From positions 62,001 to 126,000 of the forward strand of contig NIVC01002163.1 in NCBI GenBank assembly GCA_002269645.1: a stretch of 64,000 nt of DNA, read 5' to 3'. Within the stretch, counting starts at the first letter, position 1, and every line of letters begins with the position of its first letter. The translations under genes and the position numbers were made by a program. This document shows, in pieces, positions 4,901 to 64,000 of this stretch. The notes beneath the pieces were generated by a model. That model was not told the DNA's origin, ran no database searches, and saw only the letters and a list, made by a program, of their open reading frames with translations. This DNA is from Macrostomum lignano. Lineage: Eukaryota.

Positions 4901-6866
4901 CCAGGTGACCACTCTCTGACCCAGGTGACCACTCTCTGACCCAGGTGACCACTCTCTGGCCCAGGTGACCAGTCTCTGACCCAGGTGACCACTCTCTGAC
5001 CCAGGTGACCACTCTCTGACCCAGGTGACCACTCTCTGACCCAGGTGACCACTCTCTGGCCCAGGTGACCACTCTCTGACCCAGGTGACCACTCTCTGAC
5101 CCAGGTGACCACTCTCTGACCCAGGTGACCACTCTCTGACCCAGGTGACTACTCTCTGACCCAGGTGACCACTATCTGAGCCAGATAACCACTATCTGAC
5201 CCAGATGACTACTCTCTGACACAGGTGACCACTCTCTGACCCAGGTGACCACTCTCTGACCCAAGTAACCACTCTCTGACCTAGGTGACCACTCTGACCC
5301 AGGTGACCACTCTCTGACCTAGGTGACCACTCTGACCCAGGTGACCACTCTCTGACCCAGGTGACCACTCTCTGACCCAGGTGACTACTCTCTGACCCAG
5401 GTGACCACTATCTGAGCCAGATAACCACTATCTGACCCAGATGACTACTCTCTGACACAGGTGACCACTCTCTGACCCAGGTGACCACTCTCTGACCCAG
5501 GTGACCACTCTCTGACCCACTTGACCACTCTCTGGCCCAGGTGACCACTCTCTGACCCAGGTGACCACTCTCTGACCCAGGTGACCACTCTCTGACCCAG
5601 GTGACCACTCTCTGACCCAGGTGACCACTCTCTGACCCAGGTGACTACTCTCTGACCCAGGTGACCACTATCTGAGCCAGATAACCACTATCTGACCCAG
5701 ATGACTACTCTCTGACACAGGTGACCACTCTCTGACCCAGGTGACCACTCTCTGACCCAAGTAACCACTCTCTGACCTAGGTGACCACTCTGACCCAGGT
5801 GACCACTCTCTGACCTAGGTGACCACTCTGACCCAGGTGACCACTCTCTGACCCAGGTGACCACTCTCTGACCCAGGTGACTACTCTCTGACCCAGGTGA
5901 CCACTATCTGAGCCAGATAACCACTATCTGACCCAGATGACTACTCTCTGACACAGGTGACCACTCTCTGACCCAGGTGACCACTCTCTGACCCAGTTGA
6001 CCACTCTCTGACCCAGGTGACCACTCTCTGACCCAGGTGACCACTCTCTGACACAGGTGACCACTCTCTGACCCAGGTGACCAGTCTCTGACCCAGGTGA
6101 CCACTCTCTGACCCAGGTGACCACTCTCTGACCCAGGTGACCACTCTCTGACCCAGGTGACCACTCTCTGACCCAGGTGACCACTCTCTGACCCAGGTGA
6201 CCACTCTCTGACCCAGGTGACCACTCTCTGACCCAGGTGACCACTCTCTGACCCAGGTGACCACTCTCTGACCCAGGTGACCAGTCTCTGACCCAGTTGA
6301 CCACTCTCTGACCCAGTTGACTACTCTCTGACCCAGGTGACCAGTCTCTGACCCAGTTGACCACTCTCTGACCAAGGTGACCACTCTCTGACACAGGTGA
6401 CCACTCTCTGACCCAGGTGACCAGTCTCTGACCCAGGTGACTACTCTCTGACCCAGGTGACCACTATCTGAGCCAGATAACCACTATCTGACCCAGATGA
6501 CTACTCTCTGACACAGGTGACCACTCTCTGACCCAGGTGACCACTCTCTGACCCAAGTAACCACTCTCTGACCTAGGTGACCACTCTGACCCAAGTAACC
6601 ACTCTCTGACCAAGGTGACCACTCTTTGACCCAGGTGACCACTCTCTGACCCAGGTAACCACTCTCTGACCCAGGTAACAGGCACGATTCGAATCGAGCT
6701 GACGCCGCGCGAGGCCTGCAGCGGCCGGTGCGCCCCCCTGCAGGCGGTGCTGCGGCCGGGCCAGCTGCTGGCGGTGAGCAACTGGTACTACCGGCTGGCC
6801 TGGCTGCCAGTCACCATGGGCGAAGGCTTCGCCGTTGGTTTGGAGGCCAGCACTGTTAATTTCTAA
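1960..6866 (+). CDS. 4-exon gene (~369 aa), type II membrane protein resembling the C6orf89/BRAP family
   Basis: Exons 1960-2184, 2747-3010, 3796-4224 and 6675-6866 join in phase 0 via GT..AG (CAG|GTAAGT, ATGCAG|GCC, GAG|GTGCGC, CCCAG|GTG, CAG|GTCTGA, CCCAG|GTA), ending at TAA 6864-6866. N-terminal TM helix (VLTVLLIVVPSILIYM), CRNC motif and C-terminal IELTPREACSGRCAPLQAVLRPGQLL recall human C6orf89 from memory, so family assignment is tentative. Confidence 0.7.
3040..3682. repeat. Intronic minisatellite, ~27-28 bp unit (AATAGAAAAATCGCCCTCCCCAAACCC-like)
   Basis: Directly visible degenerate tandem repeat filling intron 2 of the C6orf89-like gene. Confidence 0.95.
4365..6676. repeat. Intronic minisatellite, 20 bp unit GACCACTCTCTGACCCAGGT, ~115 copies
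   Basis: Directly visible; fills intron 3 and its last unit supplies the acceptor of exon 4. Confidence 0.98.
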
Positions 6867-24417: not shown

Positions 24418-25401
24418 ATGATGTCACAACTCGGATTAGGAACTTCTGAGCGAGTCAGAGCAGATCTATCTAATGATGACGATGACGCGGATCTCACCTG
24501 CAGCATCTGCGACTGCCTGTTTGAGGATCCACGGGTGACGCCCTGCGGCCACAGCTTCTGCTGCGCCTGCCTGACCGACTGGCGTCAGCAGCCCGGCGGT
24601 GACGCCTGCCCGCTCTGCCGAGGCCGCTGTCCTGCGGGACTGGAGCTGCCCAGAAATGTCTGCCTGGCTGGCTTGGTCGAGCGGCGTAGAGCGGCAATCT
24701 ACGCTTCTGGTGTTGCTTCTGAAGGCACGAATACTTCTGATGTTATTTCTATAGATACTTCTTCAGATTTTACTTCCGGTGTTGCTTCCGGAATTACTTC
24801 TGAAGTTGCTTCCGGTGTTGCCTCCGGTGCTGCTTCCGGTGTTGCAAATTCAAGCACAGGAAGTGATCCAGGCGCGCTTTCCACGGCATTGGCAAGTCCC
24901 GAGCGAAGTGACGCTGCCCGGCTGAATGCAGTTGAAGCAGTTCTAGTCGACCTGATCGCCGGATTGTCTGTCGCCGATGGTCAGCAGGATTGGCGTCGCA
25001 TACAACTTCCCGCATTGCTGAACGACCTGCTTCCGCCCCAAGCCGGACCGGTGCCGCGTCTGCAGACTGCGCCTCAGTTAGAGACTTCGCCAACCCAAGA
25101 GTCATCTACATCGCGGCAGCTGCCGCCGCAGCGACCTCCGCCACCGCGATTGCCCACTCCACCGCCTCGACCGCCGCCCCCGACACCAATCACTGCAGTG
25201 GCCACAGTTCGACGCTCAGCCAGCAGCGAGGACTACAGGCGGGCATCAAAACGGCGAGCTCCGCCGCCTCCGTCGTCAGCGCTGCAGTCGCCTCAGCTGC
25301 GGCATCCTCAGCAGCAACAAGCAGCAGCCGCAGACGGGAAGCTGGCGGCCAGACTGCGTCGATTGACGTTCAGTTTCCGGCGATTCGTCTTTAATTCCTA
25401 A
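24418..25401 (+). CDS. Single-coding-exon RING-HC (C3HC4) protein, probable E3 ubiquitin ligase, with Pro-rich C-terminus (327 aa)
   Basis: CSIC..FEDPRVTPCGHSFCCACL..CPLCR RING motif; acceptor ACAG| lies 3 nt upstream of the ATG. Confidence 0.85.
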   Translation: MMSQLGLGTSERVRADLSNDDDDADLTCSICDCLFEDPRVTPCGHSFCCACLTDWRQQPGGDACPLCRGRCPAGLELPRNVCLAGLVERRRAAIYASGVASEGTNTSDVISIDTSSDFTSGVASGITSEVASGVASGAASGVANSSTGSDPGALSTALASPERSDAARLNAVEAVLVDLIAGLSVADGQQDWRRIQLPALLNDLLPPQAGPVPRLQTAPQLETSPTQESSTSRQLPPQRPPPPRLPTPPPRPPPPTPITAVATVRRSASSEDYRRASKRRAPPPPSSALQSPQLRHPQQQQAAAADGKLAARLRRLTFSFRRFVFNS

Positions 25402-28048: not shown

Positions 28049-29717
28049 TGTGGCGGCCAGACTACACGACCAGCAGCACCAGTGCAGCCGCACTGGAAAC
28101 CCCCCCGCCAACCTCTGTCTAGCTGAGGTGGGGTGGTGGCGCACCGCGCTAGCCAGCTCGCTAAGCCAGGAGGGTTTGCATAGCCAATCACGCCACGCCA
28201 CATGTGCGCACCTCCTTAGACCCCTCTATAATCTCGCACTATTTGTAATATAAATATACGCGCAAAGCAGTGCAAAATCTTTGCTGCCATTCCATCTATT
28301 GAAACTAAAAGGCCTTCCGCCTCATTGGTGAGCCCGACTCCCAGCGCGGAACGCTAGGCCTACCTGGTCGGCCCTGTGTGGTCCTGGTAGCCAACCGCCT
28401 TGGCCGACTGCAATGGCAGCACCGCAGCACAGCAGCACCGCAGCACAGCAGCACCGCAGCACAGCAGCACCGCAGCCGTGGAGTGGCAGAAGGTCGCCAA
28501 GCAGGCGCCAATGGCAGCAGGTCGCCGAGCGGGCGCCAATGGCAGCAGGTCGCCGAGCGGGCGCCGATGGCAGCAGCTTGCCGAGCGGGCGCCGGGCGGG
28601 CGCCGAAGGCAGCAGCAGGGCGCCAGGCGGGCGCCGAAGGCAGCAGCAGGGCGCCAGGTGGGCGCCGAAGGCAGCAGCAGGGCGCCAGGCGGGCGCCGAA
28701 AGCAGCAGCAGGGCGCCAGGCGGGCGCCGAAGGCAGCTGCAGGGCGCCAGGCGGGCGCCGAAGGCAGCAGCAGGGCGCCAGGCGGGCGCTGAAGGCAGCA
28801 GGGCGCCGATGGCAGCAGCAGGGCGCCAGGCGGGCGCCGAAGGCAGCAGCAGGGCGCCAGGCGGGCGCCGAAGGCAGCAGGGCGTCGATGGCAGCAGCAG
28901 GGCGCCAGACGGGCGCAGAAGGCAGCAGCAGGGCGCCAGGCGGGCGCCGAAGGCAGCAGCAGGGTGCCAGGCGGGCGCCGAAGGCAGCAGGGGCGCGCGG
29001 CCGGACCACACCAGAGGCAATCGACAGTCAGTTGCCGCCGTGAGCCGGATCGATGCTCCTGCACAGAGGCTGGGGACGCTAGGCTAGCAGCAGCACCGCA
29101 GCCCAGCAGCACGAATCGGCCCAGTCAGCCCGCCCCCCGGTAGCTCCTGGGGTCTCGCTTTTCGGCCCCCACGTTGGACCAACCAGCGCCACACGCTGCA
29201 GCTACTTCTAGGTTAGCACCGCTGGCTGCTATCGGCGCCCGCCTGGCGCCCTGCTGCCTTCGGCACCCGCCTGGCGCCCTGCTGCCTTCGGCGCCCGCCT
29301 GGCGCCCTGCTGCCTTCGGCGCCCGCCTGGCGCCCTGCTGCTGCCTTCGGCGCCCGCCTCGCGCCCCTGCCGCCTTCGGCTCCCGCCTGGCGCCCTGCTG
29401 CTGCCTTCGGCGCCCGCCTCACGCCCCCGCCGCCTTTGGCGCCCGCTCCTTGGCACTCTCGCTGCCTCGGCTACCCCGACGTTTGTGGTCTAGCTCGGTG
29501 CTGGGGGGAGCTGTGTGGCGGCCAGACTACGCGACCGGCAGCACCAGTGCAGCCGCACTGGAACCCCCCCCCCCAGCCAATCACGCCACGCCACATGTGC
29601 ACACCTCCCTAGACCCCTCTATAATCTCGCACTGTTTGTATTATAAATATACGGGCAAAGCAGCACAAAATCTTTGCTGCCATTCCATCTATTGAAACTA
29701 AAAGGCCTTCCGCCTCA
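28049..29717 (+). mobile_element. Complete non-autonomous LTR retroelement (TRIM/LARD-like, probably Ty3/Gypsy-derived)
   Basis: LTRs 28049-28324 and 29514-29717, both TG...CA; ATAT target-site duplication on both flanks; PBS TGGTGAGCCCGAC just after the 5' LTR (resembles the tRNA-Trp 3' end complement); G-rich PPT (GGGGGGAG) before the 3' LTR; no gag/pol. Confidence 0.9.
28530..29435. repeat. GC-rich ~28-31 bp minisatellite present as two oppositely oriented arrays (~28530-28995 and ~29228-29435)
   Basis: GGCGCCAGGCGGGCGCCGAAGGCAGCAGCAG units on the left; reverse-complement units CTGCTGCCTTCGGCGCCCGCCTGGCGCC on the right. Confidence 0.92.
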
Positions 29718-30989: not shown

Positions 30990-33900
30990 GACGAGCTTGA
31001 GCAGCACCACGTGGACCTGTCCGACAGTCGCCAGGGTCGCACCGAGAGTGTCGACCTTGGCAATGGCAACGACTTGCGGGTCGAAATCTCCGACGCTCTC
31101 AGCGAAAAGGAGCGCGTGAAGTTCACCATCCGCACCGTGACCAGCCTGGTGCCGCGGTTCGCCCGGCCAGAGTTCTCCGTTATTCGAACACACGAAGAAT
31201 TCGCCTGGCTGGCCGACCGCCTGGCCGAGAATGTCGAATACGCCGGCTGCGTTATCCCGCCGGTGCCGCCGACGCCGGATTTTTCTTCGTCGAGAGAGAA
31301 ACTGGCCAGGCTGGGCGAGGGCGAGAGCTCCATGTCCAAGGAGGAGTATGACAAGATGAAGTCCGAGCTGGAGGCGTGAGTCGGGAGTTGGGGGTCACAT
31401 CAGTCTGGGGTTAGGGGGGTCATATCAGTCTGGAGTTAGGGGGTTCATATCAGTCTGGAGTTAGGGGGGTCACATCAGTCTGGGGTTAGGGGGGTCACAT
31501 CAGTCTAAGAGTGGGAAGTCACATCACTTTTAGAGTGGGGGTCACATTAGTCAAAAGTTAGGGGGTCACATTAGTCAAAAGTTAGGGGGTCACATAAGTC
31601 TGGGGTTAGGGGGTCACATAAGTCTGGGGTTAGGGGGTCACATCAGTCTAAGGTTAGGGGGGTCACATCAGTCTGGGGTTAGGGGGGTCACATCATTCTG
31701 GGGTTAGGGGGTCACATCAGTCTAAAGTTAGGGGGTCACATCAGTCTAAAGTTAGGGGGGTCACATCAGTCTGGGGTTAGGGGGTCACATCAGTCTTGAG
31801 TTAGGGGGGTCATATCAGTCTGGAGTTAGGTGGGGTCATATCAGTCTGGAGTTAGGGGGGTCATATCAGTCTGGAGTTAGGGGGGTCACATCAGTCTGGA
31901 GTTAGGGGGGTCACATCAGTCTAAGAGTGAGAAGTCACATCACTTTTAGAGTGGGGGTCACATTAGTCAAAAGTTGGGGAGTCACATCAGTCTGGGGTTA
32001 GGGGGGTCACATCATTCTGGGGTTAGGGGGGTCACATCAGTCTGGGGTTAGGGGGTTACATCAGTCTGGGGTTTGGGGTGTTAGGGGGTTACATCAGGTG
32101 GGGTCATATCAGTCTGGAGTTAGGGGGGTCATATCAGTCTGGAGTTAGGGGGGTCACATCAGTCTGGAGTTAGGGGGGTCACATCAGTCTAAGAGTGAGA
32201 AGTCACATCACTTTTAGAGTGGGGGTCACATTAGTCAAAAGTTGGGGAGTCACATCAGTCTGGGGTTAGGGGGGTCACATCATTCTGGGGTTAGGGGGGT
32301 CACATCAGTCTGGGGTTAGGGGGGTCACATCAGTCTGGGGTTAGGGGGGTCACATCAGTCTGGAGTTAGGGAAATCACATCAGTCTGGAGTTAGGGAAAT
32401 CACATCAGGCTGGAGTTAGGGAAATCACATCAGTCTGGAGTTAGGGAAATCACATCAGGCTGGAGTTAGGGAAATCACATTAGGCTGGAGTTAGGGAAAT
32501 CACATCAGTCTGGAGTTAGGGAAATCACATCAGTCTGGAGTTAGGGAAATCACATCAGTCTGGAGTTAAGGGGACTGGGGTCACATCAGTCTAAAATTTG
32601 GGGGGAGGGGTCACATCAATCTAAAATTTGGGGGGAGGGGTCACATAAGTCTAAGAGTGGGGGCTCACAACAGTCTAAAGTTGGGGGTCATCAGTCTAAG
32701 AGTGGGGGCTCACAACAGTCTAAAGTTGGGGGTCATCAGTCTAAGAGTGGGGGCTCACAACAGTCTAAAGTTGGGGGTCATCAGTCTAAGAGTGGGGGCT
32801 CACAACAGTCTAAAGTTGGGGGTCATCAGTCTAAGAGTGGGGGTCACATCAGTCTAAAGTTGGGGGTCATCAGTCTAAGAGTGGGGGCTCACAACAGTCT
32901 AAAGTTGGGGGTCATCAGTCTAAGAGTGGGGGCTCACAACTGTCTAAAGTTGGGGGTCATCAGTCTAAGAGTGGGGGTCACGTCAGTCTGGAGTAGTCAT
33001 AAATAAGACAGAAATATATTTTTGTGTGATTTCTATTCAGAACTCAAGTTTCAATATCCCAACCATGCCGTGTCTCCTAGCGAGTACCTGGCCACCTTCA
33101 AGAAAACGGTCGCCATGCACGAAGTCTTCCTGCGGCGCATCGCCGAGCACCCGAAATTGCGCGAGGACGACATTTTCAAGGTGTTTCTGGAGTTCGACAA
33201 GGATGTGAGCGGCTTGATAATTATGAGAATAGGACTTTGAGAATGGCTCTTCTAATGGCCATTCTACTCCTGAGAGAGTCGCCCTTCTACTCCTGAGAGA
33301 GTCGCCCTTCTACTCCTGAGAGAGTCGCCCTTCTACTCCTGAGAGAGTCGCCCTTCTACTCCCGTGAGAATCGCCCTTCTACTCCTGAGAGAATCGCCCT
33401 TCTACTTCTGAGAGAGTCGCCCTTCTACTCCCGTGAGAATCGCCGTTCTACTCATTAGAGAATCGCCCTTCTACTCCTGAGAGAGTCGCCCTTCTACTCC
33501 CGAGAGAATCGCCGTTCTACTCATTAGAGAATCGCCCTTCTACTCCTGAGAGAATCGCCCTTCTACTCCCGTGAGAATCGCCCTTCTACTCCCGTGAGAA
33601 TCGCCCTTCTACTCCTGAGAGAATCGCCCTTCTACTCCTGAGAGAGTCGCCCTTCTACTCCCGTGAGAATCGCCGTTCTACTCATTAGAGAATCGCCCTT
33701 CTACTCCTGAGAGAATCGCCCTTCTACTCCCGTGAGAATCGCCCTTCTACTCCTGAGAGAATCGCCCTTCTACTCCTGAGAGAGTCGCCCTTCTACTCCC
33801 GTGAGAATCGCCGTTCTACTCATTAGAGAATCGCCCTTCTACTCCTGAGAGAGTCGCCCTTCTACTCCCGAGAGAATCGCCCTTCTACTCCTGAGAGAAT

Positions 33901-41098: not shown

Positions 41099-41715
41099 CT
41101 ACTGAACAGCACCAGTTTGGCCAGTAGTATCTGCCGGATCTGGCACCCGTTCGAACACGGCTGGCAGGCAGCTGCGACCCTCTCGTTGAGCTTTCCGGCC
41201 CTCCTCGGTCGTATCGACCAGACGCGGCGTCAATGGGTCGCTCGCCAGCTCATCTGGCGACAGTTGGCGGAACAGCGGATGGCAGGCGGCGTGCTGCACA
41301 ATCCAGTCGTGCAGTTCGGGCACGTCAGTAGCCGTGTAGAGCCGGCCGCCCGGCCGCAGCACGTAGGCGTATTCGGCTAGCAGGGCCGGGCTGATGATTC
41401 GCCATTTGTGCTTGGCCCGTTTGAAATGCGGATCGGGGTACAGGAACAGCAGCTTGCTGAGCTGGCCCTGCCGGGGTCGCGATGGCCAATGAGAAACGAG
41501 TAAGATGTACAAGGAAACCAGAAACAGTCTCCGATGCCAAGAAAGAATCTCTCTGGACCCTTTAACTATGCCAATAAATATTATTTATTAACCCAATTCA
41601 TATAAGTATATCCTGGCGCAACGCTTCCAGCGACATCGTCTCATAACCAACACTGAGGCGATTCTGCCCAATCCCATGACTACTGAGAAACATACAAGCG
41701 TTTGTAATGCTGTAA

Positions 41716-41755
<40 letters not shown>

Positions 41756-42817
41756 GCACAGGGTGTAAAACGGCCCTCTGATTTTCTAATCGGATTTTGC
41801 TTAAATTATCGAGTTTCATTTCAGAAAATCAATGCATCATTTCCTAGAACTAAGATGTGAATTTCTTAGAATTAGGATGTTCTTTCCAAAAATTGTTTCA
41901 CTTAAGAAGAAAGATATTATTTGCTGTAATCAAGGTGGTATTCTCTGAAATCAAGTGTGGTCATTGCTTGGAATCGAGACATTATTTCTTGGAATCAAGG
42001 TGTCATTTCCTGGAATCAAGGTATCATTTCCTGGAATCAAGGTATCATTTCCTGGAATCAAGGTATCATTTCCTAGAATCAAGGTATCATTTCCTGGAAT
42101 CAAGGTGTAATTTCCTGGAATCAAGGTATCATTTCCTGGAATCAAGGTGTCATTTCCTGCAACCAAGAAGTCATTTCCTGGAATCAAGGTGTCATTTCCT
42201 GCAACCAAGAAGTCATTTCCTGGAATCAAGGTGTCATTTCCTGAAATCGATGCATCAAGTTGTGATTCAGCTCAATGCGTCACATCCAACAAAATGGCGT
42301 CTCAGGAATTGGCAGAAGCTACTGTTTGAGTGTAGAATTATCAAACTCTGCAAACGCGCACCTTTCGAAAATAATTAACCAACTGTTTCATAGCGTTGCT
42401 CCTGACACAGGCAATGTTGCCATAGCAACCAGGATGAGCGGCCCGCATAGCTCGAATCTTCTCTTGCACATAGTCGCACACTTTAATCCGAATCTCCATG
42501 CCGAGCGCCCGCCTGTCCGGGTGCAGCTCGGCCAGGGCGAACAGCATGCCGCCGTAGCCGCAGCCGACATCGGCGAATTCCACATCGTCGCCTTCTTTGA
42601 AATCGCTGGCAAAGATGCCCGGCCAGTCGACGTCAGCCGGCCGGCTTGGCGAGTCAAGACTGTGCCGGGAGTGCGGGTTGCAGTGCGCCCGCTGCCGGAA
42701 ATAGCGCTTCTGCGGCAGCTGCTGCTCCTCACTTATTGAGGCCATTGAGGATGAGGGCTCGAGTCTGCAGTCATGAATGGAGCGGACAAATATCGAGTTT
42801 GAAGTACGGAGTAGCAT
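41099..42817 (-). CDS. METTL1: tRNA (guanine-N7)-methyltransferase catalytic subunit (METTL1/Trm8)
   Basis: Exons 42817 (or 42745)-42362 and 41467-41099 in phase 0 (AAG|GTGCGC ... GGCAG|GGC). Motifs LPQKRYFRQRAHCNP, VEFADVGCGYGG, GMEIRIKV and LFLYPDPHFKRAKHKWRII. Confidence 0.96.
41717..41752. repeat. (AC)n microsatellite
   Basis: Directly visible in the METTL1 intron. Confidence 0.95.
41966..42243. repeat. Intronic minisatellite, 21 bp unit CCTGGAATCAAGGT(A/G)TCATTT
   Basis: Directly visible. Confidence 0.93.
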
Positions 42818-42849
42818 TGAGGATCGAAGCCTAGAAGAGCTTTGAGGAA

Positions 42850-43455
42850 TTAAGCCTAACATCCTGAGAAGTGGCGGGAGATTTAGTCTGAAATCCTGAA
42901 GAATCGGTGAGGGATTGAGTCTGAAGTCCTGAGAAATGGCGGGAGATTGAGTCTGAAGTCCTGAAGAATCGGTGAGAGATTGAGTCTGAAATCCTGAAGA
43001 AACGGTGAGGGATCGAGTCTGAAGTCCTGAGAAATGGCGGGAGATTGAGCCTGAAGTCCTGAATAATCGGTGAGGGATCGAGTCTGAAGTCCTGAGAAAT
43101 GGCGGGAGATTGAGCCTGAAGTCCTGAATAATCGGTGAGGGATCGAGTCTGAAGTCCTGAGAAATGGCGGGAGATTGAGCCTGAAGTCCTGAATAATCGG
43201 TGAGGGATCGAGTCTGAAGTCCTGAGAAATGGCGGGAGATTGAGTCTGAAGTCCTGAAGAAACGGTGAGGGATTGAGTCTGAAGTCCTGAGAAATGGCGG
43301 GAGATTGAGCCTGAAGTCCTGAATAATCGGTGAGGGATCGAGTCTGAAGTCCTGAGAAATGGCGGGAGATTGAGTCTGAAGTCATGAAGAATCGGTGAGG
43401 GATTGAGCCTAAAGTCCTGACGAATCGGTGAGGGATCCAGCCTGAAGTCCTGAAC
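42850..43455. repeat. Dimeric minisatellite, 65 bp (32+33) unit, upstream of METTL1
   Basis: GAAGTCCTGAGAAAT recurs at 43021 and 43086; lies between a candidate donor (43491) and acceptor (42831) on the - strand. Confidence 0.93.
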
Positions 43456-44059
43456 AGCAATACCAAATAGATAACTCATTAAGACATTCACCTACTGAAA
43501 TAACTTATAAAGCAACAAAGAAGGCACTCCAGTGACAATATCAGTGAACATCACTTGTATTACAGAGCTACGAGCAGGTGACACAGCAATAGATATATGA
43601 TTGAAATTTGGTCCTCCAATAAAAGCCAAATAGGCCAATATTGCGTACACATGCTATGCCTAGCATAGAGTACACAGTTAATGATTTATATAATTGAATT
43701 ACATCTGCCTAACATGTTTAACCGCCACCACTGATAGTCAAGACAAAGGTTAATAGGTTATTAATAGGCTAGTTTAAATAAATAATGAATTTCAAAACTC
43801 ACTCAGTCATTCAGAAACCATTTGCATCATAAGAGAAAAAATCTACGAGTTCTTTTAACTTAGCAATTAAATCAACGATTTAAACTCAACAAAAACACAT
43901 TATATTTATGAGCGAAAGACTTATAATATTAAACTGCTGGTGCTGTTTTGTCTTAGCTTTGATAACACGAGATCCGAGAGGTACAGCAATTAGACTCGGG
44001 TAAATTAGATTCTCTGCAGTATATCTCACACATAAAATATGATCTCATCCCCTAGCAGG

Positions 44060-46237: not shown

Positions 46238-47583
46238 TCATCGCAGAAACACAACAAACAAGACAAAGAAAATGACAAGCAGGCCGAACACCTTCAGCAT
46301 TAAGCTCCTATTTGAGGTTAAAGATTTGAAAAATTTTAACAATTCCGCGTGAGCCACATCGACGTTGAGGGCGGTGTCGTCAACGCTGGCTCCGATACGG
46401 TGCACCAGCTCGTCCTGCTCCTTCACAATGGTGGCGAGCTGCTGGAACACGGAGCCGAGGTCCACCATGGTCTGTTCGATGCTTCGCATTGCATCGTCCC
46501 GCTCGTCCTGCTCCCGCGCATTGGCGAGCACCTGGCCCTGCCGCTGGTGCTGCTCCACGATGCCCGACATGTCAATGACCGAAGCGTCAGATTGACTGCG
46601 GTGCATCGAATCAGATTGATAGGCGGCCTGGTGTTGCTTCTGCTGCTGCTGCTTCAGCTGGACAGTGTCCTGATACCGGCCGGACATGTCGGCCAGACGG
46701 GTCTGCAGCGCCAGCACTACAGCGCTACTGTGGGCTGCCGACTGGCCGTGCGGAGATGCGCCGCTGTGCCTGATGGAGTCTTGCAGCAATCCGATCGACT
46801 GGTTCAGGCCGTTCAGATCCTGTGCAAGTGCCGGTTTTTCCGATCAAGCTGATATTACTAACAGTAGAGTAGCAATATACCCGCTTTTAAGCTTCTCGGA
46901 TATTGAAGTTGCATACTAACCACAACCGACTCTGCTTAACCTCAGATAGAGGATAAGAATGGGAATAATTAGGATAGACATTGGGATGGAATTCCAATAT
47001 TTAAACTATTAAATTTTACCAAATTTCATCAGCTTTGTTTAAAAATTTAACGCAGCTTTTACGCTAAACAAAGTTATTTACGATACATATCGCCAGTCAG
47101 AAGTTGCACTCTCACCTGACCGACAATCCTGGCGAGCTCGTCGAACTCTCCGACAGAAACCGGCAGCTGTTGATGCCCGGTGGCGGTACGCCCGGCCAGC
47201 AGCGCCAGTTTCTGCATTTTGGCGCCTGTCCGATTCAAATTGGCGCCAATTTGGCGCGCGTGCATTGCGAAACGGGACTCGCCAACGGCGCCTGGTGTGG
47301 CGCCAGCTCTTCGGCGCCAACCGGCGGCACCGCCGCCAAGGCCGCACATCTGGGAGACGACGGCGCGAAATTCCGGCGTCCGATCGCGACAACCGCCGGC
47401 GCCGCCGCTCGGCAACGAAGGCGCCATCGACGCGTTTGACGCCGGCGCCGTGGCGCTAAAACCAGACGCGGCAGGCGGTGACGGCGCCGGGGAGCCGTAG
47501 TAAGTTTCCTGCCAGGCGCCAGAGCGACCCCAGCTGGCGCCGACTGGCTCGCGCCGATGCCTGGCGCCAAATTCACCGTTCAT
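46238..47583 (-). CDS. STX5: Syntaxin-5 (Sed5) Qa-SNARE
   Basis: Exons 47583-47116 and 46819-46238 in phase 0. CRDRTPEF Sly1-binding motif, IVGQ|DLNGLNQSI, SNARE motif IEQTMVDLGSVFQQLATIVKEQDE, and C-terminal TM LKVFGLLVIFFVLFVVFLR. Confidence 0.95.
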
Positions 47584-48163: not shown

Positions 48164-49096
48164 CTAGCGAAGCCGCTTTCGTTTGGGTGGCGACGAATCG
48201 GAATCGGCATTCCGGATTTGTGCTTTAGGCCTTGCCGACGTCTTTGAAGTTGGCGGCGGCGGTGCCTTTGAAGTTGGCGGCGGTGCCTTTGAAGTTGGCG
48301 GCGGTGCCTTTGAAGTTGGCGGCGGTGCCTTTGAAGTTGCTTGCGATATCTGCTTTGAAGTTGGCAAGTTGGCATTAGTTGACGCCTTTGATGTTGCCGC
48401 CTCAGCTGGCGCCGTCAAAGCCTCCGCGGCCTTATCTCGCCGGCTAACGCAGGAACAGCCGAGCCAATAGAATCGCAGCGGCATGGCGGCGGCGGCCGGC
48501 CCGCAGCCGTCAATACCGATCCGCCGCGAAGTGACAATCTGATTGGCTGGCGGGCCGGGCGCCGACTCAATGTACACCCGGGCAGCCGGATCGCACATGT
48601 CAGTTTTATTATGAGTCAGCTTATCAACTGCTAGTGCTTGGCACAGCTTGGACGGACCGTTGCACAGCTCGTGCGGTTTCAACAATTTTGCGCCAACGGT
48701 ATCATTGCTACTATTAGTAGTTTTACTGAATTTGCCGCGTCGCGACTGCATAGCCGACTCGCCTTCGCACGGTTCCAAGGCGCGGATTAGTACTGCGCAA
48801 CCGTCGCCATTGGACGATACGTTGATGCAGCAGTACTGGCCGTAGATGCTGTACACGTAGCAGGTGCCCGGCTGCATGAACATAGCGGCGTTGCGCTCAG
48901 TTCGGCCTCTGTAAGAGTGCGCGGCCGGGTCAGCCTCGCCCAGGTAGGCCTCAGCTTCCACTATGCGGCCGGCTGAGCGGCAGCCGCTGGGGTCCGAGGC
49001 CTCGCAGACCAGGCGCTGGCCCAGCAGCCGCTTAGCCAGCTCCACGCAGTCGCGGGCGTAGAAGTCGCGGCCAAGGCGGACTGCGGCCGGGGATGC
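48164..49096 (-). CDS. MPG: 3-methyladenine DNA glycosylase (MPG/AAG); initiation site unresolved
   Basis: LAKRLLGQRLV, GRIVEAEAYLG, MFMQPGTCYVYSIYG, VLIRALEP, NGPSKLCQAL and SRRIGI motifs. Acceptor CCCGCAG| at 49097-49099; an alternative unspliced in-frame ATG lies at 49180. Confidence 0.93.
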   Translation of the reverse strand, partial: ASPAAVRLGRDFYARDCVELAKRLLGQRLVCEASDPSGCRSAGRIVEAEAYLGEADPAAHSYRGRTERNAAMFMQPGTCYVYSIYGQYCCINVSSNGDGCAVLIRALEPCEGESAMQSRRGKFSKTTNSSNDTVGAKLLKPHELCNGPSKLCQALAVDKLTHNKTDMCDPAARVYIESAPGPPANQIVTSRRIGIDGCGPAAAAMPLRFYWLGCSCVSRRDKAAEALTAPAEAATSKASTNANLPTSKQISQATSKAPPPTSKAPPPTSKAPPPTSKAPPPPTSKTSARPKAQIRNADSDSSPPKRKRLR

Positions 49097-49244
49097 CTGC
49101 GGGCGAGCAATGTGATGAAGAGGCTTGGAGTAGCTGAGATTGAGAAGTCTATTTGGCAGATTTATCTTAAAAATTGACATTTGGGAACATGGGAATAGAT
49201 CGAACAAAGGGATCTAATAAAAATCAATGGAAATGATTGGGACA

Positions 49245-50070
49245 TGGCGATCGGGGAAAGAGGATAAGGATAAAGGAATGGAAAAAGGGGATCGGGGAAA
49301 GGGGATTCGGGCATGGGGATCGGGGAAAGTGGATTCATGCATGGGGGATTTGGGCATGGGGATCGGGGAAAGGGGATTCGGGCATGGGGATCGGGGAAAA
49401 AGGATTCATGCATGGGGATCGTGAAAAGGGGATTTGGGCATGGGGATCGTGAAAAGGGGATTTGGGCATGGGGATCGTGAAAAGGGGATTCGGGCATGGG
49501 GATCGGGGAAAGTGGATTCGGGCACGGGGATCGGGGAAAGGTGATTCGGGCATGGGGATCGGGGAAAGGTGATTCGGGCATGGGGATCGGGGAAAGTGGA
49601 TTCATGCCTGGGGATCGGGGAAAGGTGATTCGGGCATGGGGATCGGGTAAACTGGATTCATGCATGGGGATCGTGAAAAGGTGATTCGGGCATGGGGATC
49701 ATGAAAAGGGGATTCGGGCATGGGGATTGGGAAAGGGGGATTCGGGCATGGGGATCGTGAAAAGTGGATTCGGGCATGGGGATCGGGAAAAGGGGATTCG
49801 GGCATGGGGATCGGGAAAAGGGGATTCGGGCATGGGGATCGGGAAAAGGGGATTCGGGCATGGGGATCGTGAAGTGGATTCGGGCATGGGGATCGGGAAA
49901 AGGGGATTCGGGCATGGGGATCGGGAAAAGGGGATTCGGGCATGGGGATCGGGTAAAGTGGATTCGGGCATGGGGATCGGGAAAAGGGGATTCGGGCATG
50001 GGGATCGGGAAAAGGGGATTCGGGCATGGGGATCGGGTAAAGGGGATTCGGGCATGGGGATCGGGTAAAG
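49245..50070. repeat. G-rich minisatellite, 28 bp unit GGGGATTCGGGCATGGGGATCGGGAAAA
   Basis: Directly visible upstream of MPG. Confidence 0.96.
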
Positions 50071-50599
50071 GGTATCGGTGAAATGGGGTTATTGGGAAAG
50101 GAAATAAGTGAAATGGGATGTGGCGCATGGATAGGTGGATAAAGGGAAAGTCAACAGAGGACAATGGGAGGAGAATTACTACAAGCATATAATTTTCGCT
50201 GAACTCACGCCTTATACGAAATGATAAAATCCGGTCAATTTTTAAAAAAAAATTCGCCAAACAAAATGTATATTGGTAGCACAATGCAGATGCGATTGAC
50301 AAGTAGCAAAATACGAGTACATTAGGAAAAGTTGTCTAAGAGATCAAGTTCACCAGTTTGCCAATCAGGGTCAATCAGACATAAACAAAATACAATCGAT
50401 GCCTAAAACGCAATTAAAAATGGTCTTGGCCATTGCTTAAATAGTATAGCAGATTTGTGAACTCTCGTGATAAATGTTGCGATAATAAAATACAATTTTT
50501 TTGGACGTGGGAACAGTGCAGCACTCGATATGTTGTTGAAAGCCAGATAGAAGGACACAAAAAATGAAGTAAATTACATGCAGCTCCGATCAGATGGGA

Positions 50600-52309: not shown

Positions 52310-53822
52310 TCAGTCGATGCCGAAATACCTGGCGCAGAAGTGATACGGCACCAGATCGTGCACCTCGGTAGTGAGCACCCGAACGTCCGGATACTCCGAC
52401 AGCACAGAGTCTAAGCCGTGCCGAGTTGAGAACAGATTAAGCAGAAACAGATTCGACTCGGGCACCTGATAATCCTCGGTTAGCAGCTGCAGGGCTTTGG
52501 TGGCAACTCGGCCGTCGCCAAGCACTGGCTGCATCAGCAGGACTCGACGCTGGTGCACCCGAGGCGGCAGACGGACGTACACCGGCTCCGGTGCGTCGGC
52601 GCAGTCGCCGCCAGCGCAGTCGCCTCCCTGGATGAGCATCTTGCCGATGCGGATTGCCCGGCAACAGTCGCGCAGGCCTTTCTCCATCGCTTCGCCAGAC
52701 GGCATAACGCTGATGCCGCAGCTGCCGCGGGAGGCGCGCAGGCCGTCGTAGGGATGCCCGCCTGGCGTCAGCACCGACAGGGACTGGTAGGGCAGGTAGT
52801 TCAGCGCTTCCTCAACCAGCAGTCGAATCAGCCTGTCAGCGTAGAATACGAAATCCGACCGGCTGGTGTCGCGATCCCGCAGCAGAGTGTGCAGCTCGCA
52901 CAGCTGGCAGCTGGGCGTCAGGACCCGGACTCGGCTGCCGCTGGAGTCGCTGTCGGCGGCCTCCTCCGCGGCGGTGCTTGGCGCCGATGGCTGGCGCTGG
53001 CGACCGGTGCCGTCGGACCGGCAGGCCGCTCTGCGATTGAGGGGTTTGGGATCAGTCGCGGCATTCGAGATCGGTAATTTAAGATTAGGGAGTAGCTTAA
53101 AGGATTATTGTCCTAGGATTAGGGATTGCTGTCGTAGGATTAGGGATTAGTGTCCCAGGATTAGAGATTAGTGTCCGAGGATAAGAGATTCGTATGCTAG
53201 CATTAGGGATTAGTGTCCTAGGATTAGCGATTAATGAACTAAGATTAGGGATTTGTATGCTAGGATTAGGGATTAGTGTCCTAGGATTAGAGATTTATAT
53301 CCTAGGATTAACAATCAGTGCCCTAGGAGTAGGGATTTGTATGCTAGGATTAGGGATCAGTGTTCTAGGATTAGAAATTTGTAAGCTAGGGTTAGGCATT
53401 AGTATCATAGGATTAGGGGCTAGTATCTAACACTTGGGTATTGGTATCCAAGGCTTAGAGATTATTAGAATTAGTTATCAGTATTCTAGGTTTAGGGATC
53501 AGCATCCATAATAGATGGGATCAATAGGCCTATTGATAAATATCTTATAATTTTAACTTCTAAAGATTCAGAATCAATATTACAAATTTAAAAGAAGTTT
53601 AAAAAATAATGAAAATTATTACTTATTATCTTGTTAGTAATAAGGATTAACACATTATTTTTAAAAATATAGTTAGTATCAAGATATAAAAAGTAAACAT
53701 AGAAAAATACAATTTTTTTCTTACCTTGAAACATCCTTTGAGTCAAGAATGCACTGTTGGAATGGTGGCCCATTGAGAGCAGAAGCTGGTTTGCATCCAT
53801 TAATACCAATATTGTAGTCCAT
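52310..53822 (-). CDS. UPRT: Uracil phosphoribosyltransferase homolog, animal UPRT type (~272 aa)
   Basis: Exons 53822-53725 (MDYNIG..DVS, phase 2 donor AG|GTAAGA) and 53030-52310 (CGCAG|A). Motifs DFVFYADRLIRLLVEEALN, SGEAMEKGLRDCCRAIRIGKMLIQ and LTTEVH..YFGID match animal UPRT. Confidence 0.93.
53084..53500. repeat. Degenerate intronic minisatellite (GGATTAGGGATTAGTGTCCTA-like)
   Basis: Visible but diverged. Confidence 0.75.
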
Positions 53823-59580: not shown

Positions 59581-59601
59581 GATAAAAAAAGCAAAAAGAA
59601 A

Positions 59602-60548
59602 TCTCTCCATTTCAGCATTCGAGGTGTGCCACGAAGCTCACAGATGTTCAATTGAAAAGATATTTTTGGTGTAAAGTCTACTCAGATGTTATATTGCAAA
59701 AATGCTTTTAGTTTAATTTTAAAAAGATTTTCCTTGCTGTAGTATGCATTTGATTTTTTTGTACAGTCACCATCTACGTCGTAAATTCTAAAGAAAATTC
59801 TCTCCATTTCAGCATTCGAGGTGTGCCACGAAGCTCACAGATGTTCAATTGAAAAGATATTTTTGGTGTAAAGTCTACTCAAATGTTATATTGCAAAAAT
59901 GCTTTTAGTTTAATTTTAAAAAGATTTTCCTTGCTGTAGTATGCATTTGATTTTTTTGTACAGTCACCATCTACGTCGTAAATTCTAAAGAAAATTCTCT
60001 CCATTTCAGCATTCGAGGTGTGCCACGAAGCTCACAGATGTTCAATTGAAAAGATATTTTTTGTGTAAGGTCTACTCAAATGTTATATTGCAAAAATGCT
60101 TTTAGTTTAATTTTAAAAAGATTTTCCTTGCTGTAGTATGCATTTGATTTTTTTGTACAGTCACCATCTACGTCGTAAATTCTAAAGAAAATTCTCTCCA
60201 TTTCAGCATTCGAGGTGTGCCACGAAGCTCACAGATGTTCAATTGAAAAGATATTTTTTGTGTAAGGTCTACTCAAATGTTATATTGCAAAAATGCTTTT
60301 AGTTTAATTTTAAAAAGATTTTCCTTGCTGTAGTATGCATTTGATTTTTTTGTACAGTCACCATCTACGTCGTAAATTCTAAAGAAAATTCTCTCCATTT
60401 CAGCATTCGAGGTGTGCCACGAAGCTCACAGATGTTCAATTGAAAAGATATTTTTGGTGTAAGGTCTACTCAGATGTTATATTGCAAAAATGCTTTTAGT
60501 TTAATTTTAAAAAGATTTTCCTCGCTGTAGTATGCATTTGATTTTTTG
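59602..60548. repeat. 197-bp satellite, ~4.8 near-identical copies, inside the TIR element
   Basis: TCTCTCCATTTCAGC recurs at 59602, 59799, 59996, 60193 and 60390. Confidence 0.97.
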
Positions 60549-61206: not shown

Positions 61207-64000
61207 TCAATTTTCCAGATCCGGTTCGCAGCTGCTGTAAAATCTGTCGAGTTCTTGCAGCACTCTGGTGGAAGTCGGTCGCTGAGCCGAGTTCAGGGCC
61301 AGGCACGGTCTGAACACCCTGTCGCACAGGTCTAGATAGCACCTGTCGCTGATAAGCAGCCCTACCTGCGGCGACGGCGGCTGCTGCACTGACGAGTCGC
61401 CCAGCAGGCTCAGTCGCAGCTCGGGCTCACCGCCGCCAGAGGCGCGCCGGCCGGTGAACAGCTCCAGCAGGGTGACGCCAAGGGCGTACACGTCCACCTT
61501 GCAGGACAGGAGCTCGCCAGGTGCGCCTGGCCTGTCCGGTTCTCCCGGCACGAAGTAGCCATTGGTGAAGTAGCGGATTCTGGGCTGCGAGGACTGCGGC
61601 CTGTCTTCCATCCGCGTGAGGCCCGATCCTGCGGTGGCCGTCTGATGGGGCAGGAATGGAGACTGTGATGAGGCTGCTTAGGGAAAATTTGGAATCATTC
61701 ATTCCTCCTTGTTGGCGTTAAACTACAGTGGTCCATGTTGCTATACTACAGTGGTCCTTGGCGTTAAACTACAGTGGTCCTTGGCGTTAAACTACAGTGG
61801 TCCTTGGCGCGGGAGGAGGAAGGGAGGGAGAGTCTGAGACTGAGAACGGAGAGCAGCCCCTACTCAAAGGACGGAGCAGCCTCAACTCAGTTGCCTGAGC
61901 AGCCGCGATCTCCCCAGACACACCTGCAGGCTGTCCCCGATCTCCCCAGACACACCTGCAGGCTGTCTCCGATCTCCCCAGACGGTCCCCGATCTCCCCA
62001 GACACACCTGCAGGCTGTCCCCGATCTCCCCAACACCTGCAGGCTGTCCCCGATCTCCCCAGACGCACCTGCAGGCTGTCCCCGATCTCTCCAGACGCAC
62101 CTGCAGGCTGCCCCCGATCTCCCCAGACGCACCTGCAGGCTGTCCCCGATCTCTCCAGACGCACCTGCAGGCTGCCCCCGATCTCCCCAGACACACCTGC
62201 AGGCTGTCCCCGATCTCCCCAGACACACCTGCAGGCTGCCCCCGATCTCCCCAGACACACCTGCAGGCTGTCCCCGATCTCCCCAGACACACCTGCAGGC
62301 TGTCCCCGATCTCCCCAGACACACCTGCAGGCTGCCCCCGATCTCCCCAGACACACCTGCAGGCTGTCCCCGATCTCCCCAGACACACCTGCAGGCTGTC
62401 CAGGTCGCCCAGCTTGCAGTGCCAGTCAGCAGTGAGCAGCACGTTGGTGCTCTTCACATCCTGGTGCGCCAGGCTGAAGCTGCGCCAGTCGCCAGCCGCT
62501 GCGGCTTCGACCTCCTGCCAGCTGTGCAGGAAGTCCAGGGCGCTGGCCAGCTCGTGCGCCATCCGGATTCGAACTCCGGCCAGCTGGAACTCGCAGGCGG
62601 GCGGTGCCCGGCCGGCGGCGAAGTCGTCAATCAGCTGCCGCAGGTTGCCGGCCTCGCACAGCTCGTAGACCAGCAGGAGGTCGCCGCCCGCCGCCTCGCC
62701 GCGGTGAGCGAAGCCGAGCAGCCACAGCAGCCGGGGATGGCGGAGGCCCGCCTGGCGCCGCAGCGCCTCCAGCGGGATGCCCGCAGAGTCGGGCAGCAGC
62801 TTCTTGACGGCGACCGGCCGCCCTGCCAGGTTCACCCGGTACACGCGGCCGAAGCTGCCGGCTCCGAGCTCCTCGCCGACCGCGGCATCCAGCTCGGCGA
62901 AGCTGAACTCCTGCAGCCCGGCCTCACCGTCCTCGGCCTCGGCCGCGGCCAGCAGCGTCTGCAGGCGGCCCCGCAGCACCGCGGCGGTGCACCTCTCGGC
63001 GAAGTTGTGCAGCAGGCAGGGCGCCACGGCTTCTCTGCAGACGCGGGCGTGCAGACCTGCGGACAGCCGCAGCCCCGGCTGAGGCGGCGGAGCCCGACCG
63101 TCGGCCAGGGCCCAGCAGAGCCAGGACTCCTCCGGAGTGTCGCTGCTGGCGGGCTGGCCGCGCAGGCCGGTGAGCAGCTCCAAGATGGTGACCCCGGTGC
63201 TGAAGACGTCCCACTTGCAGGTGACTCGGTCTTCGGGCGGCCGGTAGCCCAGCGTGTGCACTCTGGCCACCTGCTGGGCCCGCTGCTCACCCCAGACGGT
63301 CTGGCCGAGCCCTGCGGTGGTCAGGTCGAGGAAGTCCAGGTCGGCGAGGCGGCAGCGCCAGTCGCCGTCAACCAGGATGTTGCTGGGTTTCACATCCTTG
63401 TGCACGAAGCTGAAGCTGAGGAGGCCGGCCCGCTCGTCTCGCGCCATCGACTTCTCCTCGGTGGCGTGCAGGAACTCCACGGCCGAGGCGATGTCGGTTG
63501 CCATGCGGAGCCGCGTGCCGCCCAGGTGAAACCCGCTGGCCACCGCCTCCGCCGACGACCACCAGCTGTGGGGCTCGGCGAACCGGTCGAGCAGCTGGCG
63601 GAGGTCGCCGTTGCTGTGGAAGTCGAACACGGAGTACATGCGGTCGTCGGCGGGCGAGTAGCCGAAGCCGACCAGCCGAGCGATGCTCGGGTGCCGCAGG
63701 CCGCTGAGGGCGCCGATCGACCTGCGGATGGCCTGGCGCGCCTCCTCGCTGATGCCCGGTCGGTAGACCTTCACCGCGTGCTGCCGGCCTTCGACCAGCG
63801 CTGCCGTCCGGAAGACCTCGGCGAAGCCGCCCGAGCCGATCAGGGAGCCGCAGGCCACGGCGCGCCGGAGCTGCTCCGCCGGGAACTCCAGCGGCGAGTC
63901 GTCTGGTGGAAGCGGAGGCGGAGGCGCGGGCGGGGGCGGGGGCGGAAGAGACGGAGGGGGCGGCTCCGCAGTCGTGGGCGGAGGCTGCCAGGCCTGGTTC
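61207..64000 (-). CDS. Tandem double protein kinase, IRAK/Pelle-like, non-RD; 5' end lies beyond the window
   Basis: Open frame from the window end (Pro-rich linker) to donor CAG|GTGTGT at 62389; last exon 61641-61207 (ATCAG|ACG), phase 0. Two sets of GxGxF, AVK, HxDVKxxN, DLD and DV(F/Y)..GV..LEL.TG motifs. Confidence 0.88.
61905..62400. repeat. Intronic minisatellite, 32 bp unit (- strand GGGGACAGCCTGCAGGTGTGTCTGGGGAGATC), ~15 copies
   Basis: Directly visible; the first unit overlaps the kinase exon end and donor. Confidence 0.97.

Follow-up and report, generated by a model that had tools for sequence, protein, structure and literature searches.

RESULTS

A gene for two protein kinases in the Macrostomum lignano genome

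We have analyzed a 64,000-nucleotide (nt) stretch of the genome of the flatworm Macrostomum lignano (contig NIVC01002163.1, positions 62,001 to 126,000; the whole stretch is hereafter called the window). On its minus strand, from 64000 down to 61207, translation gave a single reading frame encoding a Pro-rich linker and two protein-kinase domains (D1 and D2; Table 1). The frame is free of stop codons from position 63999 downward for 537 codons, which hold the linker, D1, and the N-lobe and catalytic loop of D2. The D2 part of this exon ends with ...CKLGDLDSLQ at 62389 and, after one intron, the coding sequence resumes in phase at 61641 with TATAGSGLTRMEDR following the acceptor (61642/61641). 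Splicing into this last exon restores a complete D2. The 5' part of the gene lies beyond base 64000, outside the window, and the spliced product visible in the window has 681 residues.

The coding periodicity of the main exon is strong, with a GC content of 0.91 at third codon positions (GC3) against 0.52 at second positions (GC2), and the protein contains only 1.5% Lys and 1.9% Ile. It is 99% identical to GenBank PAA94098.1 (P0001), the hypothetical protein BOX15_Mlig022961g1 of M. lignano, which bears out the original prediction of an animal gene. The splice junction DLDSLQ/TATAGSG is also present in P0001 and in four further database fragments (P0186-P0189; GenBank/UniProt models), and the Mlig_3_7 annotation was built on transcript assemblies guided by RNA sequencing (PMC5730564). 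The identical junction in models of this kind thus indicates that the gene is transcribed and spliced as modelled, with both domains on one mRNA. Hence, the gene is real, transcribed and spliced.

Since D1 and the D2 N-lobe lie within one uninterrupted 537-codon exon, they do not derive from separate transcripts, a possibility that was ruled out by this stop-free exon together with the RNA-sequencing-based models spanning both domains. The shared exon and the database models therefore support the claim that the two kinases belong to one polypeptide, and all the kinase motifs listed in the original prediction were found at their places, within a single frame of the minus strand. Neither the Rfam nor the tRNA scan of the window gave a match.

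D1 and D2 are RLK/Pelle/IRAK-like kinases

The assignment to the eukaryotic protein kinases was based on Pfam PF00069 (Pkinase; E 3.8e-36), which matched two stretches, and the kinase fold was present in the AlphaFold2 models of D1 alone and of the full-length protein. The Pfam match and the likeness of D1 to D2 (BLASTP E 5.6e-47) go well past what chance would give. The D1 model had a mean predicted local distance difference test score (pLDDT) of 72.5 and a predicted template modelling score of 0.77, with the juxta-kinase helix reaching a pLDDT of ~92. The full-length model was of low confidence (pLDDT 57.5) because its alignment covered D2 only, and it was used only for a rough Foldseek ranking. 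The activation segments were predicted at low confidence in these models.

Single-sequence searches of the PDB returned plant RLK/Pelle kinases first (CERK1, FLS2, SYMRK, BRI1 and LYK3), with 54-58 bits per domain, and IRAK4 at ~40 bits, level with DDR1, PknB and B-Raf (margin nil). When a profile of D1 and D2 was searched against the PDB, the top 49 rows were all RLK/Pelle/IRAK kinases, led by CERK1 (86 bits), FLS2 (78) and PBL2 (75), followed by Pto, BRI1, FERONIA and IRAK4 (66). The next family was PknB (61 bits), and IRAK4 was the best animal kinase in the PDB. Foldseek on the D1 model gave the best template modelling scores (TM-scores) to IRAK4 (0.65-0.70 vs. 0.54-0.60 for DDR1, EphA2 and PknB). 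With the low-confidence full-length model, IRAK4 accounted for 46 of the top 50 matches, alongside LYK3, and a full-length JAK ranked first.

Family motifs were also found. The juxta-kinase segment of D2 carries an FSFxEL motif (LQEFSFAELDAAV), comparable to FSFYELKNVT of IRAK4 and FSFAELKAAT of plant kinases, and its subdomain IX signature (DVYALGVTLLELFTGRRA) has the form DVYxxGVxLLELxTGRRA. Degenerate forms of both motifs occur in D1 (LEFPAEQLRRAV and DVFSTGVTILELLTGLRG). Because the D1+D2 profile, Foldseek and the family motifs agree, we accept D1 and D2 as RLK/Pelle/IRAK-like kinases of the TKL group. The predicted IRAK/Pelle-like kinship was thus upheld, with RLK/Pelle/IRAK kinases being nearest by profile, structure and database matches. 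A regular-expression search of the 681 residues found no TRAF6-binding motif (P-x-E-x-x-aromatic/acidic).

Both domains keep the catalytic residues and carry DLD in place of DFG

Both domains are non-RD kinases, with HKD in D1 and HQD in D2, and both have DLD where DFG is expected. In D1, which also has PPE and DVFSTG motifs, the gatekeeper is Phe, Ala stands at the third glycine of the G-loop, and the alignment places a Ser opposite the alphaC Glu of plant RLKs and IRAK4. D2 has a Leu gatekeeper and a probable alphaC Glu in PLEALRRQ. This residue, Glu411, falls in an invariant column in one alignment and one residue off the canonical spacing in another. Motif coordinates and alignment were therefore in keeping with what had been predicted of both loops, of the DLD motifs and of the missing alphaC Glu in D1.

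D1 and D2 both retain the beta3 Lys (K77 in D1 and K399 in D2, numbered along the 681 residues), the catalytic Asp, a loop of the Ser/Thr type (D-V-K-x-x-N) with its Lys and Asn, and the metal-binding Asp. The P+1 region (T-x-G-Y...P-(P/G)-E) is likewise kept, as are the Asp of subdomain IX and the Arg of subdomain XI. The invariant columns held in common with plant kinases include K399, E411, D514, K516, N519, D532, E571, D587 and R658. By the three-residue definition (beta3 Lys, catalytic Asp and DFG Asp), neither domain is a pseudokinase, and the kinase-pseudokinase pair that had been proposed was not supported.

Among ~290 kinase domains retrieved, 268 have DFG, and the seven with DLD are all M. 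lignano proteins themselves. HMMER aligns ADLD with the ADFG of CERK1, and we have therefore preferred to read DLD as DFG followed by a longer activation segment. A MAFFT alignment offers a less likely reading, in which DL would be followed by an insertion of 8-10 residues and GL(G/T), the DFG Gly being merely displaced. An Asp at DFG+2 is unusual, yet it would not necessarily be inactivating, by analogy with two other kinase groups. POMK is an active kinase with DLD, in which the first Asp binds metal and the Leu is part of the regulatory spine (PMC5142810). For bacterial DYD kinases that lack the alphaC Glu, models pair the second Asp with the basic residue of beta3 (PMC12599244).

The tandem is an internal duplication without close relatives in the databases

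D1 and D2 are 37-40% identical to each other (BLASTP E 5.6e-47), and either is ~30% or less identical to anything else. They have in common the HKD/HQD non-RD loops, DLD, a DW-x-C-x-L motif before DLD and TAG-x-G after it, and an insertion of ~10-12 residues between helix alphaE and the catalytic loop, which the model shows as a lengthened alphaE. The juxta-kinase helix is part of the duplicated unit. As D1 and D2 are closer to each other than to other proteins, a lineage-specific internal duplication, which would have followed the appearance of their common features, is the simplest history suggested by the sequences. The fusion of an IRAK4-like (RD) gene with a Pelle-like (non-RD) gene was ruled out by the 37-40% identity and by the finding that both domains are non-RD and carry DLD.

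We have searched 1.84 billion representative proteins with HMMER. The best match was the protein's own 50% cluster (1262 bits), the next was a plant protein at 134.6 bits, and only four proteins fell below E 1e-30. The 30 named matches comprised plant RLK/tandem-kinase models, a few unnamed metagenome proteins and one "TKL/IRAK" protein of Capsaspora. No orthologue or diverged paralogue was found among these representatives, and no other flatworm or animal protein came near. Since only the protein's own cluster of three near-identical variants was recovered, the expanded family envisaged in the original prediction is not supported. As far as databases show, the gene is an orphan of a fast-evolving lineage, a single gene family confined to one species. 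Horizontal transfer or contamination was rejected on the basis of gene structure, genomic context and copy number. In the literature, no report of an IRAK-type tandem kinase in an animal was found, and the gene identifier Mlig022961 was absent from the searchable literature.

Three gene copies and a candidate N-terminal region

The five database fragments represent three near-identical variants: the window copy, matched by P0187; a second locus (L001), represented by P0001 and P0188; and a third one (L002), represented by P0186 and P0189. L001 carries an in-frame RQV insertion and the substitutions W to S, W to R and V to A. The copies differ by few substitutions (10 in about 2 kb), and both kinase open reading frames (ORFs) are intact in all three. 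This copy number is as expected from the recent whole-genome duplication of M. lignano, a hidden polyploid (PMC10733133, PMC12869490, PMC5730564).

Synteny between L001 and L002 extends over both flanks, and the window departs from both loci 26 nt past the stop codon. The loss of 3' flank similarity at this point indicates that the 3' untranslated region of the window copy differs from that of its sister copies. The 3' flank of the window (61181 downward) has no similarity to the sister loci, which run on into a GA-rich minisatellite. Just 3' of the kinase gene, the window holds a 197-nt tandem repeat in 4.8 copies that are 98% identical (59595-60547).

Upstream of the kinases, L001 (9321-9635, with ATG at 9321) and L002 (8230-8544, with ATG at 8230) have an ORF of ~105 residues (MPLRQPLNLRTRL...WERSCSLEELLEVLSRRGLREAEAFVRSNLL), preceded by an in-frame stop codon, that ends in NQAWQPPPTTAEPPPPS, where the window frame starts. 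By eye, this region appears death-domain-like (ESWRALV vs. EGWKKLA and LLLWERSCSLEELLEVL vs. LLFDWGTTNCTVGDLVDLL of the IRAK death domain). Looking upstream, as the original prediction had advised, did yield an additional N-terminal region in the sister copies; of the domains sought, no TIR, LRR or significant death domain, and no transmembrane segment either, was seen in the window protein or in this upstream region. Without the upstream ORF, the first in-frame ATG would be that of MYSVFDF, in the middle of D1. As D1 thus has no start codon of its own, the in-frame state of the linker is taken as ancestral. The alternatives are decay of the sister copies and an error of the PacBio-based assembly in the low-complexity linker.

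The intron is filled by repeats of its own 5' splice site

A 32-nt minisatellite (61906-62401, minus strand; Tandem Repeats Finder) fills the intron together with a 23-nt array (61712-61809). The 32-nt unit corresponds to the last ~9-13 bases of the exon plus the 5' splice site (AGCCTGCAG/GTGTGTCTGGGGAGATCGGGGAC), and donor-like copies number 14 in the window, 9 in L001 and 5 in L002. The reading frame would be preserved only from the first donor or from every third copy, and the array thus carries its own supply of cryptic donors and makes for differences in length among the gene copies. The first unit includes the D-S-L-Q codons, and we have considered whether the DLD of D2 is a minisatellite artefact. 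This was rejected because D1, which has no intron, carries the homologous DLDFLDLTTAGLG.

Genome context

The coordinates of the gene, its kinase motifs and its neighbours are given in Table 1. The flanking housekeeping genes have a GC3 of 0.53-0.80, against 0.91 in the main exon of the kinase gene.

Table 1. Features of the kinase gene and neighbouring genes in the window (positions of the window; minus-strand features are given from 5' to 3')
Feature	Positions	Strand	Basis or remark
Pro-rich linker QPPPTTAEPPPPSLPPPPPPAPPPPLPPDD	63987-63898	-	translation; in frame with the kinases in the window copy
Pro/Ser/Thr-rich spacer, linker including flank QPPPTTAEPPPPSLPPPPPPAPPPPLPPDDSP	63987-63892	-	translation
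D1, including N-terminal juxta-kinase helix LEFPAEQLRRAV	63891-62950	-	Pfam, PDB phmmer, alignment, AlphaFold2
D1 G-loop GSGGFA	63837-63820	-	
D1 beta3 HAVKV	63780-63766	-	
D1 alphaC RRSIGAL	63726-63706	-	
D1 catalytic loop HKDVKPSN	63402-63379	-	
D1 DLD	63342-63334	-	
D1-D2 spacer, acidic/Ala, 16 residues	between D1 and D2	-	translation
D2, first part, juxta-kinase motif LQEFSFAELDAAV to DLDSLQ	62916-62389	-	same open exon as D1
D2 G-loop GAGSFG	62865-62848	-	
D2 beta3 VAVKK	62814-62800	-	
D2 catalytic loop HQDVKSTN	62466-62443	-	
D2 DLD	62406-62398	-	
Intron, 747 nt, phase 0, GT-AG (CAG/GTGTGT ... CCCCATCAG/ACG)	62388-61642	-	gene model
Last exon: D2 activation segment and C-lobe, short tail (TATAGSG..., GYFVPGE, DVYALGVTLLELFTGRRA, AQRPT)	61641-61207	-	
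Stop codon TGA	61209-61207	-	
Candidate polyadenylation signal AATAAA, 230 nt past the stop codon	60977-60972	-	pattern only
RING-finger protein	24418-25401	+	
PX-domain (sorting-nexin-like) exon	31011-31379	+	
Trm8/METTL1-type tRNA methyltransferase (two exons)	41099-42862	-	
Syntaxin-5	46238-47583	-	
Methylpurine-DNA glycosylase	48164-49207	-	
Uracil phosphoribosyltransferase	52310-52774	-	

Away from the kinase gene, the window contains a direct duplication of ~6.9 kb (13234-14304 and 20160-21230; region about 11-24 kb) with identical mechanical ORFs of 356 residues, rich in Ser and Leu. It shows very strong GC and AT skew and looks like low-complexity satellite-type sequence rather than genes. 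Further minisatellite arrays, with long spurious ORFs in several frames, were found at 4337-6394, 28300-29700, 41857-42378, 42831-43491 and 49162-50302. One of them has a 60-nt unit coding for VTWVREWSPGSESGHLGQRV, and two lie within or beside the tRNA methyltransferase gene. The arrays are consistent with the 15% of the M. lignano genome reported to consist of tandem repeats (PMC5730564).

DISCUSSION

We conclude with moderate confidence that this is a Macrostomum-restricted, transcribed gene for a soluble protein with the order N-terminal domain, linker, D1 and D2, in which the RLK/Pelle/IRAK branch of Ser/Thr kinases has been duplicated internally. The full protein would have ~786 residues, with an N-terminal domain of ~105 residues, encoded outside the window, followed by the Pro-rich linker, D1 and D2. 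An ancestral unit composed of juxta-kinase helix and kinase probably gained the non-RD loop, the DLD motif and the alphaE insertion before it was duplicated within the gene. D2 would be the likelier phosphotransferase because its G-loop, beta3 Lys, probable alphaC Glu, catalytic Asp, Asn and metal-binding Asp are all kept. D1 could be a JAK-like regulatory partner in cis, or the second Asp of its DLD could pair with the beta3 Lys, an arrangement like that suggested for DYD kinases and POMK. Since both domains are non-RD, an activation-loop phosphate on the HRD Arg should not be needed in either of them, and activation might follow from proximity or oligomerisation mediated by the N-terminal module, as is the case for IRAK/Pelle signalling.

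Several observations weigh against this description. The Tyr gatekeeper is a hallmark of IRAKs (PMC3498205), and at the position of IRAK4 Tyr262, D1 has Phe and D2 has Leu. Plant matches, many of them from grasses, outrank the animal IRAKs; this plant preference may partly reflect a shared GC-driven amino-acid composition. In D2, the alphaC Glu lies one residue off the canonical spacing, with two alignments disagreeing, and catalysis by D1 and D2 alike could suffer from the change of Gly to Asp at DFG+2 and from the length of the activation segments (37-40 residues). As to the N-terminal region, its in-register hhalign alignment with the vertebrate IRAK4 death-domain profile was non-significant (P 0.2), and Pfam, PDB (phmmer) and word-indexed database searches returned no match. 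Furthermore, the linker, a GC-rich hexamer repeat, is longer by 5 nt in L001 (9636-9753) and by 11 nt in L002 (8545-8668) than in the window (63898-63987). This breaks the frame between the N-terminal ORF and the kinases in both sister copies, whereas the window linker is in frame. The proposed fusion therefore joins the in-frame linker of the window copy to an upstream sequence known only from L001 and L002.

Four other explanations were considered. Both domains could be dead and the protein a pure scaffold, with DLD, non-RD loops and long activation segments locking an inactive-like conformation. The change of Gly to Asp at DFG+2, seen in none of the ~290 other kinase domains retrieved, the state of the alphaC Glu (missing in D1, off register in D2) and the low-confidence activation segments would fit such a double pseudokinase. 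We consider it unlikely, however, as the catalytic residues have been kept in both domains despite a duplication old enough to leave only ~40% identity, and POMK is active with the same motif (PMC5142810). Somewhat less credible is a descent outside IRAK/Pelle, either as an independent, fast-evolving TKL lineage or by old transfer of a plant or protist RLK-type kinase. It would account for the single-sequence scores, in which plant RLKs reach 54-58 bits per domain and IRAK4, at ~40, does no better than DDR1 or B-Raf, for the Phe/Leu gatekeepers and insignificant death domain, and for the reported lack of IRAKs in flatworms (PMC4484250). Yet the identity to plant proteins is only ~30%, and the gene has a host-like structure (high-GC3 exons, AT-rich flanks, a GT-AG intron), ordinary metazoan housekeeping genes around it and three homeologous copies. 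In addition, IRAK4 is its best PDB animal kinase by the D1+D2 profile and its best structural neighbour, and multi-kinase IRAK-like proteins exist in Holozoa, as in Capsaspora (see below).

That the gene is a redundant copy decaying in a neopolyploid genome, a pseudogene or about to become one, seems improbable to us. Such decay could explain why, in two of the three copies, the N-terminal ORF does not share the frame of the kinases, why all database models are fragments, and why the composition and GC3 are so extreme and the sole intron harbors a minisatellite. However, in the window copy the frame runs uninterrupted through the linker and 2 kb of coding sequence, both kinase ORFs are intact in every copy, with few substitutions, and the codon-position periodicity is strong. 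The frame differences fall within a GC-rich hexamer repeat, in an assembly based on PacBio reads, and may be assembly errors, and the RNA-sequencing-based models indicate transcription and splicing (PMC5730564). We likewise give little credence to an animal counterpart of the cereal tandem-kinase immune receptors, where one domain would be a decoy or pseudokinase monitored for pathogen action and the other would signal. The two-kinase layout, a superfamily shared with the plant tandem kinase proteins (TKPs), best matches among plant tandem or multi-kinase RLK models and the missing alphaC Glu of D1 speak for it, and kinase-pseudokinase TKPs of cereals do confer resistance (PMC11153570). Against it, the duplication is internal and lineage-specific, there is none of the family expansion or diversification typical of immune receptors, and the phylum has been reported to lack Toll-like receptors, and the helminths surveyed to lack IRAK and TRAF6 (PMC8609888, PMC4484250). 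An internally duplicated pair of RLK/Pelle/IRAK-branch Ser/Thr kinases thus remains the reading that we prefer.

Tandem RLK/Pelle-type kinases have so far been known as plant immune receptors. What is new here is an IRAK/Pelle/RLK-type kinase with an internal duplication of the kinase domain and DLD motifs, in a phylum said to be free of IRAKs. The role as immune sensor or decoy put forward in the original prediction is speculative and would rest on analogies, namely the general link between non-RD kinases and innate immunity (PMC8463890) and the precedent of the cereal TKPs (PMC11153570). A bolder version, which we think has a slim chance of being correct, is that a death-domain-like module and two IRAK-type kinases could form a self-contained relay in cis (IRAK4-to-IRAK1-like) or a kinase/decoy pair, with a Lys-Asp(DFG+2) bridge replacing the Lys-Glu bridge. 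If true, such a protein would be the animal counterpart of the plant tandem-kinase immune receptors. Toll-like receptors have been reported absent from platyhelminths, including M. lignano (PMC8609888), and IRAK and TRAF6 from the helminths surveyed (PMC4484250). M. lignano is amenable to experiment, and a divergent gene of the IRAK/Pelle-like type in this species would refine the picture of flatworms. The gene also offers a natural test of whether a DLD (Gly to Asp) activation-loop anchor can support catalysis in a canonical Ser/Thr kinase, and of the division of labour between duplicated kinase domains.

Comparison with known systems

POMK/SgK196 and the bacterial DYD kinases resemble D1 and D2 in having an acidic residue at DFG+2, with the POMK motif being literally DLD, and DYD kinases and D1 both lack the alphaC Glu. 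Unlike D1 and D2, POMK has no canonical beta3 Lys and phosphorylates a sugar. As these families are unrelated to the M. lignano kinase, the D-x-D motif is convergent. The JAK family also has a tandem of two kinase folds in an animal signalling protein. However, JAKs are tyrosine kinases with FERM-SH2 modules, and only the kinase fold is common (TM-score 0.2-0.3, root-mean-square deviation >20 A); the likeness would be conceptual, and only if D1 regulates D2.

Plant RLK/RLCK kinases and tandem kinase proteins (Pm57-type TKPs; P0002 of Macleaya and P0049 of Urochloa) scored highest in every sequence search. Like the M. lignano protein, the TKPs combine tandem RLK/Pelle-type kinases in one soluble polypeptide without a receptor ectodomain. 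They differ in that identity is ~30%, the retrieved plant domains have DFG, and the plant tandems arose by fusion or duplication within plant RLK subfamilies, whereas the M. lignano duplication is internal to the flatworm gene. Common descent with the plant TKP clades was not borne out, with D1 and D2 being closest to each other (E 5.6e-47), and the likeness is thus convergent at most.

The IRAK/Pelle family (IRAK4, IRAK1, Pelle and PIK-1) shares with the M. lignano protein a soluble layout of N-terminal module, Pro/Ser/Thr-rich spacer and Ser/Thr kinase. IRAKs are built as death domain, ProST spacer and kinase domain, and Pelle and IRAK1 are non-RD (PMC3498205). The window linker resembles the ProST spacer, and the FSFxEL juxta-kinase helix and a non-RD loop, as in Pelle and IRAK1, are common to both. 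The M. lignano protein differs by its two kinase domains instead of one, HKD/HQD instead of HGD, DLD instead of DFG, a Phe/Leu gatekeeper instead of Tyr, the insertion of ~10-12 residues before the catalytic loop, longer activation segments, an identity of ~20-25% and the lack of a significant death domain. TRAF6 motifs are present in IRAK1, IRAK2 and IRAK-M, and IRAK4, like the M. lignano protein, has none.

A parallel outside plants is the "TKL/IRAK protein kinase" of Capsaspora owczarzaki (KJE90737.1, P0029), which has N-terminal LRR_6 repeats and three kinase domains and is 25-30% identical to D2 (E 1e-18). As in M. lignano, its tandem domains are all non-RD (HLD, HLD and HLN), each with an insertion before the HxD motif; the third (HLN) lacks the catalytic Asp. 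The LRR_6 repeats, the three kinase domains and the DFG motifs set it apart, and it is not an orthologue (127 bits vs. 1262 for the self cluster). Its architecture nevertheless shows that IRAK-like proteins with several kinase domains occur among Holozoa, here in a unicellular relative of animals.

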